Positions 23,946-38,939 are shown, counted from the stretch's first letter. The stretch: DNA of 64,000 bases from Camelus ferus (GCF_009834535.1 NC_045697.1:91140001-91204000), one strand, 5' to 3'. Made by a program: numbers and translations. The notes: a model not told the origin generated them from the sequence alone.

Positions 23946-26900
23946 ACACAAAGCAAGTCAAGTGCCACTAGAGAAATCTTCAAAGCACCGGGGGAACCCA
24001 CAGAGAGTAGCAGCATGACTTTTGGTAGATGAAGGATTGGCTAAGTCTCTAACAAAGGCGTTAAAATTCCTCAAACCTTTAGGATCAGTTTAACCTATCT
24101 GGTGCAGTGTGGTTTGGGCATTTTCCACACTGTGGGTGAAGCAGAAGCAGAGATTTGAGGCATTTTCTTCTTTTTCTGGTCCTTGAGCCTGTCTTGGTTG
24201 TCAGGTTCTGTCCATGCTTTGACTTGCCCACTTAGAGAGAACTGCCTTTGACGCTATAGAAAACACAGTAACTTCACTTTGAAAAGCACTCTAGCAGAGC
24301 GCTGTCTCATTTATTTCTTAGAACAGTCCCTAAGGTTGGCAGGGTGAGTACCGTTATCTTCATTTTACAATTGAGGAGACTGAATTTCGAAGTGAATTCT
24401 TACTGGCTATTTTTTTCACAGAGGCAGAAGCAACTCGAGGCCTGAAAGTTTGACCGCAATTCTAATTCCTTTTCCAGTGCACCAAGCCTGTTTTAGATTA
24501 GGGGGAAAAATCCAAGAAAAAAAAAATAAAGCTAAATTTGCCTGGCATCAGCTTTTGGTAAAGTTAGCAAAAAATAAAAAGTAGGAAAAAAGTCTCCTTT
24601 CCCTTTTCAGTTTTGAAGGTAAACTATTACATTTTAGCTTTGGTACTCAAAAGTGATTTGCAGTTGAGAACTTTTTCTTAAGGGCAGAGGATTCTTTATG
24701 ACCTTATTTTTCTTACAATTCCAAACAAAAGGGCTAAGTGTGCTCCATTATGTCCAGATTGGTGTTTATAGTCCCATCCTTAGATGATAAATGTTACTTT
24801 ATCAAGTATTACACAGTTCTGATCCCCTCTTCCAAAGACTGGGGCTGTACATGCCAAAACTTTATGACGACAAGTCATAGAATTGGAATGAAAGAAATGT
24901 AATACTCAAATCCTACTAACTCAGATAATATACAGAAGTATCTTTTAAGCCAATGGTTCTTGGTTTTCAAGTCTTCATACTTGAGAGGGAGGTGATTTTC
25001 TAAATACTGTTGAAAGGAAAGCATGATTGCCTACTAAAAGAGTTATTCCCTAAATGCAGTATAAATGCTTCTTTTCTCTTGACTCATTGTTTCCAACATA
25101 AAGCCTATGTACTTTCTTAGATATCATGGTCACTGCCCACTTCTAGGACCTTCAGCTCAGCTGCCCCATTCCAAGGGGTCTCACATGCCAAAGGTCGGAC
25201 ATGCTGAATAATTCACTCTGCCTCTTCATGGCTCATCACAAAGCAGAGGCCACTTCTGCCTGGCATCACTTTGCATTGCTTCATATCTTTCCCCTCTTTC
25301 CTTTTTCTTTAGCCTCACTGGCCTGGGTTTGCACTTCTTAAATAATGTATTAGCACTTTGATCCTTGCTTGAGGCTGTTTTCCAGAGAATCTAGGCTCTT
25401 TCTTACTGGATTGTTATAGAACATATCTAGTAGGTCAGTATCCTCACTTCCAGTTCAGTCCGACACACCTCTTAAGCACATGTTGAATGTGGTGTTCTCC
25501 TTCAGTGGGCCCCATTGTTTGTAAAATTGAGCTGACCTTCCATCATCTGGCCTTAACAGCCCTATATATTTGCTCTCAAACTAATTTTCCAATTTTATTT
25601 TCCATGGTTTTTCATTCACACGTGCTGTTCTTTGGCCAAACTGAACTACTTGAAATGTTTTTATTACTTCTTATTTTCTGACCTCTATGTTCTTCATCAT
25701 GCTGATCCCTCAATCTATAATATTCACACTTATGGCTCTCCACATGTTTAAATTTTATCCATCAAGGACAAGTTCAAATGCCATCTTCTTCTCAGATTAA
25801 TCATAAATTCCCTCCCCTCTGCTGTCAGCCCACAAAATTCAGTAATTTCCTCTGAATCCCCCAAATCATCTTGTCTGTATTTCTCTTGTGGTGCTTACTA
25901 CTTTTTAACCTACTTTGTAGTATTTTGTTTTATTCATTCTCTCCAATTAGACCATAGGCTCCTTGAGGGCACAACTGACTGATGTACTTTTGTTTTTTGA
26001 CACTTAGCATGGCAACTTGCGTGTAATTGGTGCTTAAGAAAATTTCACAAAATTTCACAAAATTCCATTCATTACATAAAAGCCCAGGATTATGGCTAAA
26101 AATAATTAAACTAAAATATTTCTTATCTCAAGCTCTAGATCCTTGGTTTTTCATGGATATACAGGGGGAAAAATGGCCACAGGGATGCTTTTATTTGTAA
26201 GTTGAAAGGTCAAGAGATATTAATAGTGAGAATGCTGTGGCTTTCTGCCTGAGGCCATCAAACAGAACAGGCCATAGCATTTTGCTGACCCTGGACAGTT
26301 GGCTAAGACACAGTACCATATGATTTAGCTTCTTAAGAAATGACCAATCTACAAGGCTTCTGAATAATTATTCCTTCTGATAGGGAGGAAAATTTTGATT
26401 ACAAAATTCCAGCCTGAGTGTATTCTTACAGTGCTTTTACAGCATTTTAAAGTCTAACAGGTTAAAGCCCACAGAAAAAGAATGACCATAAAGAAAATGT
26501 ATAAACTATTTAAACATACTATTTGTAGTCACTCTACATGAATCATGTCTAAGATAAGTGAAATTTTCAGAGGGAGAGTAGGCAAAAACATTGGCTACAT
26601 ATTTCTCCTGTATGAAATGATAAACTATAAAATTCAAATGTATTTAGGAAATCCAGTCATATATTTATTTGTTAATAACAATGAGCTGATATAGAAATTC
26701 AGTAGCATTGGGAAGGTAAATAAATAGCACCAATGGGAGTTATTATTTCCCATTTATATTAAAACTGTCATGTTTACATGGCTGACAGATATATGTCATA
26801 TATATGATAGTGTTTGAGATTAGGAAAACTACTTTATTAAAGTAGAGAGAAATTTGACTTAACACGTTGATCGCCCACTGGATCGCATGTGTTTCCAAGT

Positions 26901-27271
26901 TCACACTTCACCACAGTGTGATGAACTAACAATATATTTGCTTATAATTAATCTGTTTTTCCAGTATAACTGGAATTGTGTTAAAAAAAATTTCTTATTT
27001 TCAATTTTCAACCTCTTTACTATTATAATTCTTCTTGGAATTATTCTGTATAGAATAAATTTGGGTAATGGAATAGTCTGGGGTGCTGTGGCATTACTTT
27101 GATATTTGTTAGCTCGAGAGTGATATATGATCCAATTGGTAGAACTGGTAGATAAGTGGTTGTTTAAAATGGTACTCTGCTCGTTTGCCTGCTCTGTTCA
27201 ATTCAGCTCGGCAGTTTTATTCTGCATCTTAGAGTCTGTGCATCTTTCAAGTATTTTTCATATCCTTACAA

Positions 27272-28970
27272 CGTAAAAATACAGTTGAGAGTGACACTAG
27301 CAGTGACAATGAAGTAATCCATGTCAGAAGAAGATAAATAAAATTTTGTTAAGTTCAAGCTCAGAGAATGAGGAGAAAGGTTATGCTGAAGTTGAAAACA
27401 CTGAGGAGATTTTAGAACAATTAGTTGTAGAGGAAGAGGAAGAAACAGAGGAGGATAATGATGGTGCACTAGATAATACTCAGTGAAAAGAGTTTACTGG
27501 CAGACAAAAGTCATTTATATTCACAGGAAAAGGTGGACTTCAGACAGAATTACCTCGTGATATCAGCCCAGGCAAAATTCTTTTGCTATTTTTAGATGAC
27601 GTAATAATAAACCATCTGGTAAAGGAGACAAACAGATATGTGGAACAAAAATTACTTCAACATCTAAACATGGTGTGTAGTCGAATAAAGAGGTGGAAAC
27701 CTACTTCTGAAGAAATTAAAAAATTCCTTGCTCTTCTGATTTGGACAGGTCTAGTGAAACCAATATCTATGACTAAATATTGCTCAAAAGACCCCCTTTA
27801 CAATTTCACATTGTCGTGTACTGTAATGTCTCATAATCATTTTCATTTGTTATTATCAAATTTGCACTTTGCAAATAATGAGACAATTGAAAGAGGTGAT
27901 AGGCTTGGAAAAATATTACCACTGGTTAAACTTTGATTGAAAATTATCAAAACAATTTTTCACTGGGCCCAGATGTCATAATCGATGAGACAATGGTTCC
28001 TTGGAGGGGAAGACTTATATTTAGACAGTATATACCAAATAAAACACACGAATATGGAATAAAATTATTTAAGTTCTGTTCGACCAAAGGTTATACGAGG
28101 TTGATAAAAATATGTTCTGGATGAGAGACTAGTAGAGCCGAGCAAATCGGATTAGCTCAAAATGTTTGCAGTGCGCTTGCAGAAAAATTACTGAATGAAG
28201 GGCATACCTTGTATGTAGATAACTTCTACACCAGCTACTAATTGGTCCTTAAATTTTTTAGTTTGAAAACTCATGTTATTGGGACTGCACAGCATAATAA
28301 AAGTTTATTTCAAAAGATGTTCTGTCCCATCCACTAAAAAGAGGTGAAATGGTGTTGCGAGAAGATGACAATTCCATTGTCATCCTGAAATGGAAAGATG
28401 TTCGGGATGTAAGAATACTTTTGACAAAACACGCACCCATTATGGTACTGGTTCTAATTCATCTGCTCTTCACCACAATCTTATAAAAATGAAGCCACTA
28501 GCCATACTTGATTATAATAAAGGAAAGTGGCATTGATAGAAGTGACCAGATGGTTTTCATATGCAACAACATTATGAAAAAGTATCAAATGCTACCAGAA
28601 ATTAACACTACATCTACTTATTGGGATTGCTGTCATAAATTCACATCTTGTATACCAGGCAAAGGCAAATTTAAAAAGTCAAATATCGAAATTTAGGGAA
28701 CTCTTAGTTAAGGAATGGTTATATTCTCCAAATATTAGGTCCAATAATATGCAAGGGGATAAAGGAGGAGAGATTCACAATTTACAAATTAGAAAAAATC
28801 CCTAAGGCAAAACAATCAGAAGAATGTGTGTCCTCTGTTATCAGGAAAGCAGGCAAACTTTGGAATGACAAGAAACTAGAAAAAATGTAAAAAAGACAGG
28901 AACATATTGTCCTAGTTGTCCAAAAACACTGCAGCTTTGTATAAACTGTTTCAATGAGTATCATAAGTAA
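27272..28970 (+). pseudogene. piggyBac transposase pseudogene (about 565 codons; DDE_Tnp_1_7-type core plus C-terminal Cys-rich domain)
   Basis: Manual translation across frames gives an acidic N-terminus, LVKETNRY, WKPTSEEIKKFLALLIWTGL, MSHNHF (decayed MSRNRF), IIDETMVPWRGRLIFRQYIPNK (D at 27984), LYVDNFYTS (D at 28218), KWKDVRDV, AILDYNKGK and GIDRSDQM (D at 28535). The CRD reads CVLC...CPSC...CINCFNEYHK, with the stop at 28968-28970. I count six frameshifts (about 27335, 27932, 28310, 28450, 28527, 28556) and six premature stops (27484, 28122, 28239, 28575, 28803, 28866). Confidence 0.95.
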
Positions 28971-29116
28971 TGTAATATTATATAATTTTGTTCAAAAGAA
29001 AATATTTTTATCTATCTGCATATATACTTATATGTTGTTACTATTAAATACTTGTATTACAAATGAAAACTGTTGGAAGTTACTTGTAAAAACCTGCATA
29101 ATTGGATGAAGGAAAG

Positions 29117-29180
29117 CGTCACCCATATCTGGGTGACGGGGCCTCTGAGGAGACACAACTGTCACCAGATTTGGGCAATG
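29117..29180. repeat. Two tandem subterminal palindromes of the piggyBac right end
   Basis: CGTCACCCA-TATC-TGGGTGACG at 29117-29138 (perfect 9-bp arms) and a decayed copy TGTCACCAGATTTGGGCAATG at 29160-29180. Confidence 0.8.
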
Positions 29181-29573
29181 TGGTGATCAACATGTTAATA
29201 GATTAATGAGAATAGGAAATTAAGAAGTTCCATATATAAAAGGGTATAATTACGTGCTCATGCATAGTTAGATTTTGTTGATAGACATAGACTTTATTAA
29301 ATCAGTAGAATCAGGCAAATATGACTTGATCAGCAAAACACTTGGAAAAGTAGTTATGATGAAGAGAAAGAGACGGTCAAGTTTTTTATTCTTATTAACA
29401 CGAGAGAGGGAAGAAATGGGTTTCAGTTGATACAAGAACAGAGATCATATAGAATTGGTTGAGCTGGGGATCAAAGAGAACACAATGAGCCTGTGAACTC
29501 AGGAATTCCTTGGGCAGATCTGTTGTGATTTCTCCCATTGGCACCACTATGACTAGCATAAGTAAACTAGGTG

Positions 29574-29730
29574 GGGTGGGTGGATAGCTCAGTGGTAGAG
29601 CACATGCTCAGCATGCATGAGGTCCTGGGTTCAATCCCCAGTACCTCCCATTAAAATAAATAAATAAGTAAGTTAAAAAAAAAAAAAAAAAGAATTACCT
29701 ACCCTTCTCAAAAAAAAATTAAAAAAAAAA
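29574..29730 (+). mobile_element. tRNA-derived SINE, camelid Vic-type, with TSD
   Basis: A box TAGCTCAGTGGTAGAG, B box GGTTCAATCCC and an A-rich tail with an aattacct insert. 15-bp TSD taagtaaacYaggtg at 29559-29573 and 29731-29745 (one mismatch). Confidence 0.9.
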
Positions 29731-30894
29731 TAAGTAAACCAGGTGTTTGTGGATCCATGTTGCCTCACTGGTCCTACCTTTAAGTATCACTTGCTGGCCT
29801 GGGAAACAGCAGAGCTCATTCTTTTCAGGGCTTTTGGGAATCACTGCGGTAGCCTGGTGCCCCAGTAGTTCTCCTTGCTCCTGATTCCTGCTAAAAATGG
29901 ATGTGATCTCACAGAGGAGTCAGCAGTAGCCTAAACCAAGTGACTATAGTCTGGGGCCAGGCTCCCTAGGCCCAGTTCTGATTAATGCCCCCTATTAAAA
30001 AAAAATACACACACACAAAAAAAACGGTATACTTTTTGCTGGCATGATTTCAAGAACTTGTGTTTTATAGCTTCCTCTTAAAACGGTTAAAACTTTTTTT
30101 CTTGAAGGAGATATTCCATTCCTTATAGCTGTGTACTAAGCTAGTTTTCCCACCACTTGTTTTGTTTTGTTTTGTTTTGTTTTTTATCCCCCAGAAACTC
30201 AGGGAGACCACAGGATGTGAAACATTTACAGTGCCTCCATAAAATGCTTTTTTCTGCTTTCTCCGACACTCTTAGGTTCTCTGCAGTGTTTACCATACAA
30301 CCAAGTCAAGCCACTAAAGTAGGTATGCTCTGTGTGAGGTGTCAGCAAAGAGAAACTTGCTGAGGGCAGAATAAGTGCAAAATAAGATATGACAATCCTT
30401 CCACCCTAACAAAGGAACAGAAACAAAAACGAATCTCTTGAGTTTGACTCCTTGAGGCTCTGTTAAAATTCCGAAATATTCATTAAATAGGGACAGTCTG
30501 AAACTCAATATTGGATTGAAAAACAAGGATTCTAAGAGGTAAACACAAAAGATTATAAGCCATTGATCAAAAAGAGCTAAAGAATTGTTGGGCAGCAGAA
30601 GCCAGACAATTTTGATGAATTTCCAGAGAGTCTAACTTTTTGGTTGTGTTTGTTTTATCAACAATGGACCCTTTATAGCAGAAAAACCCAGGTCAAAAAG
30701 CATAATCCACACACAAAACCTTCAGTGTAATAAGTTAGCGTCATTCCCAGAGGAGTGAGCCTGGCTAAGAGACTCCTCACTTGACTAATTTAAAACTGGT
30801 ATCTATGTTGTTGATGAAAGTGCATTCTGAGTATGCTTCATGAAGCAAGTGTCCTATTATGTCTATGAGTTTTTTTTTAACCTTTGGGTTAAAA

Positions 30895-36029: not shown

Positions 36030-38939
36030 TATATATTTCAATGTTTATTGAAGTATAGTCAGTTTACAATGTTGTGTTAATTTCTGGTGTACAGCATAGT
36101 GATTCAGTTATACATATATATATATTCCTTTTCATTATAGGCTATTGTAAGGTATTGAATATGGTTCCCTGTGTTATACAGTAGGACCTTACTGTTTATC
36201 TGTTTTATATATAGTAGTTAGTATTTGCAAATCCCAAACTCCCAATTTATCCCTCCACCCCCATTTCCCTCCTGGTGACCATAAGTTTATTTTCTATGTC
36301 TGTGAGTCTGTTTCTGTTTTGTAAACAAGTTAATTTGCATCATTTTTTAGATTCCACATGTAAGTGATGTCATATGGTATTTTTCTTTCTCTTTCTGGCT
36401 TGGTTGANNNNNNNNNNNNNNNNNNNNNNNNNNNNNNNNNNNNNNNNNNNNNNNNNNNNNNNNNNNNNNNNNNNNNNNNNNNNNNNNNNNNNNNNNNNNN
36501 NNNNNNNNNNNNNNNNNNNNNNNNNNNNNNNNNNNNNNNNNNNNNNNNNNNNNNNNNNNNNNNNNNNNNNNNNNNNNNNTGCTATGAACATTGGGTTGCA
36601 TGCATCTTTTTGAATTANNNNNNNNNNNNNNNNNNNNNNNNNNNNNNNNNNNNNNNNNNNNNNNNNNNNNNNNNNNNNNNNNNNNNNNNNNNNNNNNNNN
36701 NNNNNNNNNNNNNNNNNNNNNNNNNNNNNNNNNNNNNNNNNNNNNNNNNNNNNNNNNNNNNNNNNNNNNNNNNTCTCCAGCATTTATCATTTGTGAACTC
36801 CTTAATAATGGCCATTCTGACAGATATAAGGTGATACCTCATTGTAGTTTTGATTTGCATTTCTCCAGTAGTTAATGATATTGAGCATTTTTTCTTGTGC
36901 TTATCGGCCATTTATATGTCTTCACTGGAGAAATGTTTGTTTAGGTCTTCTGCACATTTTTTGCTTGAGTTGTTTATTTTTTTGTTTTTCAGTTGTATGA
37001 GCTATTTGTATATTCTGGAAATTAAACTTNNNNNNNNNNNNNNNNNNNNNNNNNNNNNNNNNNNNNNNNNNNNNNNNNNNNNNNNNNNNNNNNNNNNNNN
37101 NNNNNNNNNNNNNNNNNNNNNNNNNNNNNNNNNNNNNNNNNNNNNNNNNNNNNNNNNNNNNNNNNNNNNNNNNNNAGACTGCCTTAGGAGAACATTGCTA
37201 AGATTTATGTTGGAGAATGTTTTGCCTATGGTTTCTTCTAGGAGGTTTATAGTGTCTTGTTTTATGTTTAAGTCTTTAAGCCATTTTGAGTTTATTTTTG
37301 TGTACGTGTGAGGGAGTGTTTTAACTTAATTGATTTACATGTGGCTGTCCAACTTTCCCAAGACAACTTGCTGAAGAGACTGTCTTTTCTTGCCTTCTTT
37401 GTCAAAGATTAATTGACTGTAGGTGTATGGGTTTATTTCTCATCTCTTTATTCTGTTCCTTTGATTCGTATATTTGTTTTTGTGCCAATGCCATACTGTT
37501 TTGATTACTGTAGCTCTGTAGTATTGTCTGAAGTCTGAGAGGGTTATTCTTCCAGCTTTGTTCTTTTTCTTCAGTATTGCTTTGATGATTCTGGGTCTTC
37601 TGTGATTCCATGTAAATTTTAGGATTATTTGTTCTAGTTCTGTAAAAAAATGTTCTGGGTAATTTGATAGAGATTGCATTAAATCTGTAGATTGCTTTGG
37701 GTAGTATGGCCATTTTAACAATATTAATTCTTCCAATCCAAGAGCATGGGATAGCTTTCCATTTCTTTAAGTCATCTTTAATTTCCTTAATCAGTGTTTT
37801 ATAGTTTCTCATCATATAAGTCTTTCACCTCCTTGGTCGTTTATTCCTAAGAATTTAATTTTTTTGATGTGATTTTTTTTGATGTGATTTTAAAAGTGAT
37901 CTTCAAATTTTTTTACTTTCCTTTTCTGATATTTCGTTGTTAGTGTAAAGAAATGCAACAGATTTCTGTATGTTAATCTTGTATCTTGCTACCTTGCTGA
38001 ATTTGTTTATCAGCTCTGGTGGTTTTTGTGTGGAGCCTTTAGAGTTTTCTATATATAGCAGCACATCATCTGCATATAGAGACAATTTTACCTCTTTTCT
38101 TCCAATTTGGATCCTTTTTATTTCTTTTTCTTGTCTGATTGCTTTTTCTTGCCTGATTGGATAGGACTTCCAATACTGTGTTGAATAGAAGTGGTGAGAG
38201 TGAGCGTCATTGTCTTGTTCCTCATTTTAGCAGGAAGGCTTTCAACTTTTCATCATTGAGTATTATGTTGGCTGTGGGTTTGTCATAAATAGCTTTTATT
38301 ATGTCAAGATATGTTCCCTCTATACTCATTTTGGTAAGTTTTTATCATGAATGGATGTTAAATTTTATCAAATGCTTTTTCTTATCTATTGAGATGATCA
38401 AGTGTTTTTTTTCCTCTTTTTTTGTTGATGTAGGGTATCTCATTGATTGATTTGCATATGTTGAAACATCCTTGTGTCTCTGGGGTGAATCCNNNNNNNN
38501 NNNNNNNNNNNNNNNNNNNNNNNNNNNNNNNNNNNNNNNNNNNNNNNNNNNNNNNNNNNNNNNNNNNNNNNNNNNNNNNNNNNNNNNNNNNNNNNNNNNN
38601 NNNNNNNNNNNNNNNNNNNNNNCTGGTGTTGGTCTCAGGGTGATGATGACTTCATAGAATGAGTTTGGGAATGTTCTCTCCTCTTCAGTCTCTTGGAAAG
38701 TTTGAGAAGGATTGGTATAAGTTCCTCTTTGTATGTTTGGTAGAACTCCCCAGTGAAGCCATTTGGTCTTGGACTTTTGTTGGCAGGAAATTTTTTTCAT
38801 TACTGATTCTATTTCACTTCTAGTGATTGGTCTATTCAAATTGTCTAGTTCTTCTTGATTCTTTTGGTTGGACTGTATGTTTCTAGAAATTTGTTCATTT
38901 CTTCTAGGTTGTCCAATTTGTTGCCATATAGTTATTCAT
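36030..38939 (-). mobile_element. 5'-truncated L1 (2.9 kb; ORF2 RT/C-terminal region plus 3'UTR) with 10-bp TSD
   Basis: ORF2 fragments include [12 protein letters not shown] (RT motif), [30 protein letters not shown] and NRPITRSEIESV. TSD AATATTTCTT at 36020-36029 and 38940-38949, an endonuclease-type TC/AAGA site on the element strand. Frameshifted. Confidence 0.92.

Follow-up and report, generated by a model that had tools for sequence, protein, structure and literature searches.

A 64-kb window of Camelus ferus DNA (GCF_009834535.1 NC_045697.1:91140001-91204000; 64,000 nucleotides, the whole stretch analysed here, with positions counted from its first letter) contains a piggyBac-like transposon in which both ends, both copies of the target site and the full extent of a transposase gene can still be read (Table 1). 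The duplicated TTAA, terminal inverted repeats (TIRs) of approximately 13 bp, the transposase domain PF13843 with its triad of catalytic aspartates (DDD) and a C-terminal cysteine-rich (Cys-rich) domain identify the element as a member of the piggyBac superfamily. A preliminary description, drawn from the sequence alone, had reported both TTAA copies, both 13-bp TIRs, the absence of nested insertions and the survival of many CpG dinucleotides, and all of these features were recovered. The left and right TIRs agree at 11 of 13 positions, with both mismatches being CpG to TpG/CpA transitions, so the original repeats were probably identical. A degenerate pattern of TTAA plus TIR, allowing up to three mismatches, matched just these two sites in the 64-kb window, and BLASTN of the element against the window returned no second copy. 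That no other insertion is nested inside follows from the length, which matches the 2,343-2,344 bp of intact relatives in the hymenopterans Osmia and Athalia, and from an alignment to them without a large gap between position 413 and the last base. The element retains 24 CpGs at an observed/expected ratio of 0.35. The ratio is 0.17-0.18 in the 5 kb on either side and 0.16 over the window as a whole, and the excess is significant (Poisson p = 0.0003-0.0014).

Table 1. Coordinates of the piggyBac-like element and its parts, the compared hymenopteran elements and neighbouring sequences (window positions unless another sequence is named)
Feature	Position	Strand	Length	Details and basis
piggyBac-like element	26863-29194		2,332 bp	TTAA on both sides, 13-bp TIRs
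Left TTAA target-site duplication	26859-26862			Sequence read directly
Right TTAA target-site duplication	29195-29198			Sequence read directly
Left TIR	26863-26875	+	13 bp	CACGTTGATCGCC; 12/13 identical to Osmia/Athalia TIR CACGTTGAACGCC
Right TIR	29182-29194	-	13 bp	Reverse complement CATGTTGATCACC
Left subterminal inverted repeat	26901-26921			TCACACT-N7-AGTGTGA; small; read directly
Transposase pseudogene	27260-28970	+	~569 codons	Frameshift-aware alignment, Pfam PF13843
Longest stop-free piece	27487-27933	+	149 aa	N-terminal domain and start of catalytic domain; PF13843 E=7e-21
First catalytic Asp, retained	27984-27986	+		IIDETMVPWRGR motif; alignment to Osmia; motif conserved in clade consensus
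Second catalytic Asp, retained	28218-28220	+		LYVDNFYTSY motif; alignment to Osmia
Third catalytic Asp, retained	28535-28537	+		GIDRSDQM motif; alignment to Osmia
C-terminal Cys-rich domain	28806-28967	+		CxxC...CxxC...CxxCxxxxH; Osmia alignment; two in-frame stops
3' subterminal palindrome	29118-29143			GTCACCCA-TATC-TGGGTGAC, then GGGGCC; exact pattern match
Second palindrome copy	29161-29179			Decayed (one deletion, several substitutions); right-end alignment
Osmia bicornis element	CAJRAL010000016.1 (L004:2625-4976)		2,344 bp	TIR CACGTTGAACGCC
Athalia rosae element	OU795002.1 (L005:2772-5122)		2,343 bp	TIR CACGTTGAACGCC
Anthophora quadrimaculata element	L006-L008		2,509 bp	TIR CACGTTCGTCGCC
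tRNA-Ala(AGC)-like retroposed SINE	29558-29745			Head 29578-29649 (Rfam 49.5 bits; ARAGORN), then A-rich tail
L1 ORF2-like open fragment	37402-37815	-	137 aa
L1 ORF2-like open fragment	38345-38839	-	164 aa	Broken by masked block

The transposase pseudogene

Using a purpose-written frameshift-aware protein-to-DNA alignment with the 566-aa Osmia bicornis transposase (P0192) as reference, we aligned residues 5-565 of that protein to window positions ~27269-28964 at 59.9% identity. The probable start codon at 27260 now reads ATA, the terminal TAA occupies 28968-28970, and the frame between them is interrupted by six in-frame stops (27484, 28122, 28239, 28575, 28803 and 28866) and six frameshifts (near 27330, 27930, 28300, 28450, 28528 and 28556). 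The full-length transposase of the preliminary description is therefore confirmed in its extent but not as an intact gene: the gene is dead, and its six stops and six frameshifts rule out an autonomous, currently active transposon.

Matches to PF13843 (DDE_Tnp_1_7) above the Pfam gathering threshold come from three stop-free pieces, which lie in profile order (E = 7e-21, 3e-12 and 4e-5). The AlphaFold model of the longest, 149-aa piece has a predicted local distance difference test score (pLDDT) of 83.5. All three catalytic aspartates are preserved, while the Pfam zinc-finger match of the Cys-rich domain is weak.

Intact relatives in Hymenoptera

The closest named relatives of the transposase are arthropod proteins, in line with the preliminary description. 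Searched exhaustively with HMMER against 1.84 billion representative proteins, the 149-aa piece had 1,994 matches, and the named proteins among the best of these were all from arthropods (Anopheles, Habropoda, Polistes, Vespula, Anthonomus, Anastrepha and Holotrichia), while a word-indexed search with the same piece retrieved a Polistes fuscatus protein at 60% identity (171 bits). Among the best 120 matches of a profile search with full-length relatives, every named protein was arthropod and none came from a mammal or another vertebrate. Proteins of Osmia bicornis, Anthophora quadrimaculata, Athalia rosae, Polistes species and Dinoponera ranked closest to the element in a local comparison, and hymenopteran proteins are 56-60% identical to the 149-aa piece over the same stretch. 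No relatives of this piece were found in metagenome contigs, and viral contigs searched with the Osmia protein yielded none either.

Maximum-likelihood trees, whose sampling is limited to proteins of the searched collection, place the fossil as sister to a purely hymenopteran clade. In a careful tree of 39 rows, 9 of them hymenopteran, this placement received 100/100 support by ultrafast bootstrap (UFBoot) and the Shimodaira-Hasegawa-like approximate likelihood-ratio test (SH-aLRT), with the hymenopteran rows grouped together at 97/92; a quick tree of 77 rows (10 hymenopteran) gave the sister placement an SH-aLRT value of 100.

The likeness extends beyond the transposase fold to the architecture of the ends. 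In the genomic sequence flanking the genes of the Osmia, Athalia and Anthophora proteins, we looked for TTAA followed by inverted 13-mers; each transposase open reading frame (ORF) lies within a TTAA-flanked element with perfect 13-bp TIRs. The fossil TIR is identical to those of Osmia and Athalia at 12 of 13 positions and to that of Anthophora at 10 of 13. These hymenopteran elements, whose products are named 'piggyBac transposable element-derived protein 4-like', have in common with the fossil the TTAA target, 13-bp TIRs starting CACGTT and a single-ORF transposase of ~565 aa with a DDD triad and a Cys-rich domain, and the Osmia and Athalia elements also share its total length of ~2.33 kb. 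Amino-acid identity to the hymenopteran transposases is 58-60%, and the fossil's nucleotide sequence between position 413 and its 3' end is 66% identical to the Osmia element. They differ in that the fossil is dead and resides in a CpG-depleted, mammal-type host genome, and the divergence is too large for any of them to have been the donor.

At the right end, the last ~90 bases are conserved between the fossil and each of the three insects. They include two palindromes whose arms are 8 bp long (GTCACCCR-N4-YGGGTGAC), and GGGGCC comes after the first, so that the fossil shares with the hymenopteran elements two 3' GTCACCC-N6-GGGTGAC palindromes with GGGGCC after them. Searched as a pattern, GTCACCC-N6-GGGTGAYRGGGCC has a single match in the window, at the first palindrome (0 expected by chance), and one match per hymenopteran locus (n = 5); among contigs of viruses and of bacterial genomes, the only matches were chance ones in GC-rich DNA. 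At the left end the first ~25 bases are common to fossil and insects, and the 5' subterminal region beyond cannot be aligned; the small subterminal inverted repeat in that part of the fossil is not conserved in the left ends of the hymenopteran elements. By its TIR, its two 3' palindromes (one exact, one decayed) and its phylogenetic position, the fossil belongs with the hymenopteran piggyBac lineage that carries CACGTT TIRs.

The Cys-rich domain of the Trichoplusia ni piggyBac transposase binds subterminal repeats, and by analogy the palindromes are likely to be transposase binding sites. Like the fossil, the T. ni element (IFP2) has TTAA target sites, 13-bp TIRs, asymmetric subterminal repeats, a DDD transposase and a C-terminal Cys-rich domain (PMC4625184), but its TIR is CCCTAGAAAGATA in place of CACGTTGATCGCC and it falls outside the closest proteins. 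The preliminary description had also set the CAC start of the TIR against the CC start of the human families; as a mark of novelty this did not hold, as a CAC start is frequent in bee piggyBac elements (PMC10140906).

Several further observations concern the relatives themselves. The Osmia and Athalia elements (L004:2629-4972 and L005:2776-5118) are 94.5% identical in DNA over the whole 2,344 bp, non-coding ends included. Osmia is a bee and Athalia a sawfly, and the two represent deeply diverged hymenopteran lineages; identity this high suggests that the family has recently passed horizontally between hymenopterans, and because of it the lineage seems transfer-prone. In Anthophora quadrimaculata at least three loci (L006, L007 and L008), two of them ~51 kb apart on one contig, encode an identical 559-aa transposase, and all three have perfect TIRs, which fits a family that is active now or was so until very recently. 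In a human gut metagenome, a 1.9-kb contig (L051, ENA) encodes a PF13843 fragment that shares 49% identity with the window piece and may represent dietary or environmental arthropod DNA. Finally, a 2.7-kb Logan contig of insect-like CpG content (L003) contains a decayed relative with 68% nucleotide identity to the fossil and a possible left end, TTAACACGTTGA (L003:494-511), without a matching right end; we did not use it as evidence.

Decay and probable horizontal origin

Three measures of decay agree on approximately 0.08 substitutions per site (K). Given the codon usage of intact relatives, 62-80 stop-creating changes are expected per unit K, and the six stops observed correspond to K = 0.075-0.097. 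Among 85 alignment columns conserved in at least 90% of 131 relatives, 14 (~16%) are changed in the fossil, corresponding to K ~0.07-0.08, and many of these changes are of CpG type (R to H, Q or stop; A to V; P to L). The 24 CpGs left, compared with 86-127 in intact relatives, fit the same K when CpG sites are assumed to mutate ~8x faster. At a general mammalian rate of 2.2e-9 substitutions/site/year (bioRxiv 10.1101/2022.12.28.522108), K = 0.08 translates to ~36 million years, and at 1.4e-9 to ~57 million years, from which we infer an age of ~35-60 million years with a wide error. DNA sequencing runs of two organisms (>20 independent runs) hold 0.83-0.92 of the element's sequence words; the insertion is therefore germline and predates the split of these two, evidently very close, organisms.

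Lineages leading to Hymenoptera and to mammals have been separate for more than half a billion years. Given that separation, a copy that is only tens of millions of years old leaves horizontal transfer as the only reasonable origin, most likely from or through an arthropod-associated source. With the arthropod affinity, the 100/100 tree placement and the TIR and palindromes common to fossil and insects, horizontal transfer, which the preliminary description had suggested, is still the best reading. We consider it highly probable that the locus preserves a dead but structurally complete autonomous piggyBac-like copy of a hymenopteran-type lineage that reached an ancestor of the host horizontally ~35-60 million years ago. 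As understood from the superfamily, the DDD transposase would have bound both the 13-bp TIRs and the subterminal palindromes, the latter via its C-terminal Cys-rich domain. Excision of the element would have been followed by its reinsertion at a TTAA, with duplication of that site. The present copy results from a single insertion into a TTAA of a CpG-depleted genome of mammalian type and has since accumulated roughly 0.08 substitutions per site by neutral decay. It represents a family in the same lineage as hymenopteran elements (of bees, wasps, ants and sawflies) that are intact and probably still mobile, and outside the lineages behind human MER75/PGBD4, MER85/PGBD3 or bat piggyBat.

Vertical inheritance of a catalogued, ancient eutherian-wide family of the Looper or UCON29 type, well preserved by chance, is the alternative that survives best, and we judge it improbable. 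Counts in hg19 make both families expected in any eutherian (PMC4625184), and the 3'-end comparison allows up to ~16% divergence. Yet none of the 531 Looper copies and none of the 240 UCON29 copies in human retains intact inverted terminal repeats (ITRs) with TTAA (PMC4625184), whereas the fossil keeps both ends and both duplications; its frame is readable at full length with K ~0.08, and its CpG observed/expected ratio is twice that of the surrounding DNA. Along with human MER75/PGBD4 and MER85/PGBD3, these families share with the fossil their superfamily and their status as piggyBac fossils or derivatives in a mammal, and Looper and UCON29 are set apart from it by the preservation of the ends rather than by consensus DNA.

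It is very unlikely that the element was exapted or domesticated, that is, kept by the host for a gene or regulatory function. Contigs from RNA sequencing (RNA-seq) of an organism designated A do hold 8-21% of the element's words, and the preservation appears good at first sight, but six stops and six frameshifts interrupt the frame, ~16% of the residues conserved in the superfamily have changed, many through CpG decay, and the CpG loss is what neutrality predicts; transcription from an intron or by read-through would fit the partial RNA coverage.

Less likely again is membership in a known younger mammalian family, whether MER75/PGBD4, MER85/PGBD3, piggyBat/piggyBac_ML or mouse-lemur piggyBac1/2_Mm. 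NCBI names the closest insect proteins 'PGBD4-like', and PGBD4 is the top Swiss-Prot structural match of the 149-aa model, but with only 28% identity over 147 aligned residues; PGBD3 reaches 31% over 124, and PGBD2, PGBD5 and PGBD1 reach 28%, 23% and 20%, compared with 56-60% for hymenopteran proteins over the same 149 aa. The piggyBat transposase (PDB 9c0f) scores 40.9 bits (E=1.9e-9) against 171 for Polistes. With 20-31% identity to PGBD1-5 and this low piggyBat score, the element is distinct from the human families, in agreement with the preliminary description. The ends point the same way: the lemur TIR (npiggy1_Mm) is of the CCC type and begins CCCTTTGCAC (PMC2997546), and the ITRs of MER75 and MER85 resemble the CCC-type ITR of T. 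ni (PMC4625184). PGBD3 and PGBD4 are, in addition, restricted to primates (PMC5381638). What the fossil would share with Myotis piggyBat, piggyBac1/2_ML and lemur piggyBac1/2_Mm is the horizontal invasion of a mammal lineage by piggyBac, which is documented for them (PMC2997546, PMC10162687); those families are young or active, in contrast to a fossil with ~8% decay, piggyBat is distant and the lemur TIR is of the other type.

Insect contamination or an assembly chimera, to which the insect affinity of the nearest relatives could be ascribed, has a negligible probability, since the fossil is CpG-depleted (0.35 versus 1.0-1.15 in the insect copies), broken, bounded by TTAA precisely within host sequence and present in >20 independent runs of two organisms.

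Some points weigh against the transfer and date we favour. At the 3' end, 12 of 75 sites invariant among the hymenopteran elements differ in the fossil, an upper bound that allows a somewhat older age. The age itself derives from one copy and an assumed neutral rate, and the stop count has a Poisson 95% range of K ~0.03-0.2. The donor cannot be named because identities of 60% in amino acids and 66% in nucleotides are too distant, and closer relatives are possible in unsampled taxa, other vertebrates included. Within mammals, the family is known here from this single locus.

A bolder form of the horizontal-transfer reading, under which the locus records an undescribed cross-phylum transfer and a piggyBac lineage still moving between hymenopterans entered, in the Paleogene, the stem of the mammals to which the host belongs (possibly the camelids), is one we put forward tentatively and judge less likely than not. 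The literature we searched reports no DNA-transposon invasion for camelids, and we found no description of the family there under its TIR sequences or as a piggyBac element of camelids. A low-copy family at ~8% divergence could have escaped the Zoonomia curation, because that effort was aimed at families with <4% divergence, and automated libraries may hold it. If the family is already in Dfam or Repbase, the locus is an ordinary annotated repeat, and its link to Hymenoptera alone is noteworthy.

Few invasions of mammals by DNA transposons are documented from after the early eutherian radiation, and they are concentrated in bats, strepsirrhines, tenrecs and a few others (PMC10162687, PMC2997546). 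If correct, horizontal acquisition of an insect-type piggyBac in the mid-Cenozoic by another mammalian lineage would be an additional, independent transfer, from a family that, judging by its bee and sawfly copies, also looks transfer-prone today. The comparison between fossil and insects furthermore picks out the conserved cis elements of the lineage, namely the TIR and the paired subterminal palindromes, at which the transposase is likely to bind.

Neighbouring sequence

Downstream of the element lies a retroposed short interspersed element (SINE) with a tRNA-Ala(AGC)-like head (Table 1). Direct repeats of 16 bp, ATAAGTAAACTAGGTG and ATAAGTAAACCAGGTG, lie on either side, and for that reason the insertion looks young. 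This tRNA-Ala-derived SINE may resemble the camelid SINE, which makes it a lead to the host lineage and not a test; a literature search for its sequence gave no match.

As regards transcription, the contigs that hold 8-21% of the element's words include those of runs labelled reproductive system metagenome, alongside the RNA-seq of organism A, and the locus probably lies inside a transcribed region such as an intron. Farther along the window are two L1 ORF2-like open fragments, whose best database identity is 74-77%, to metagenome-derived fragments.

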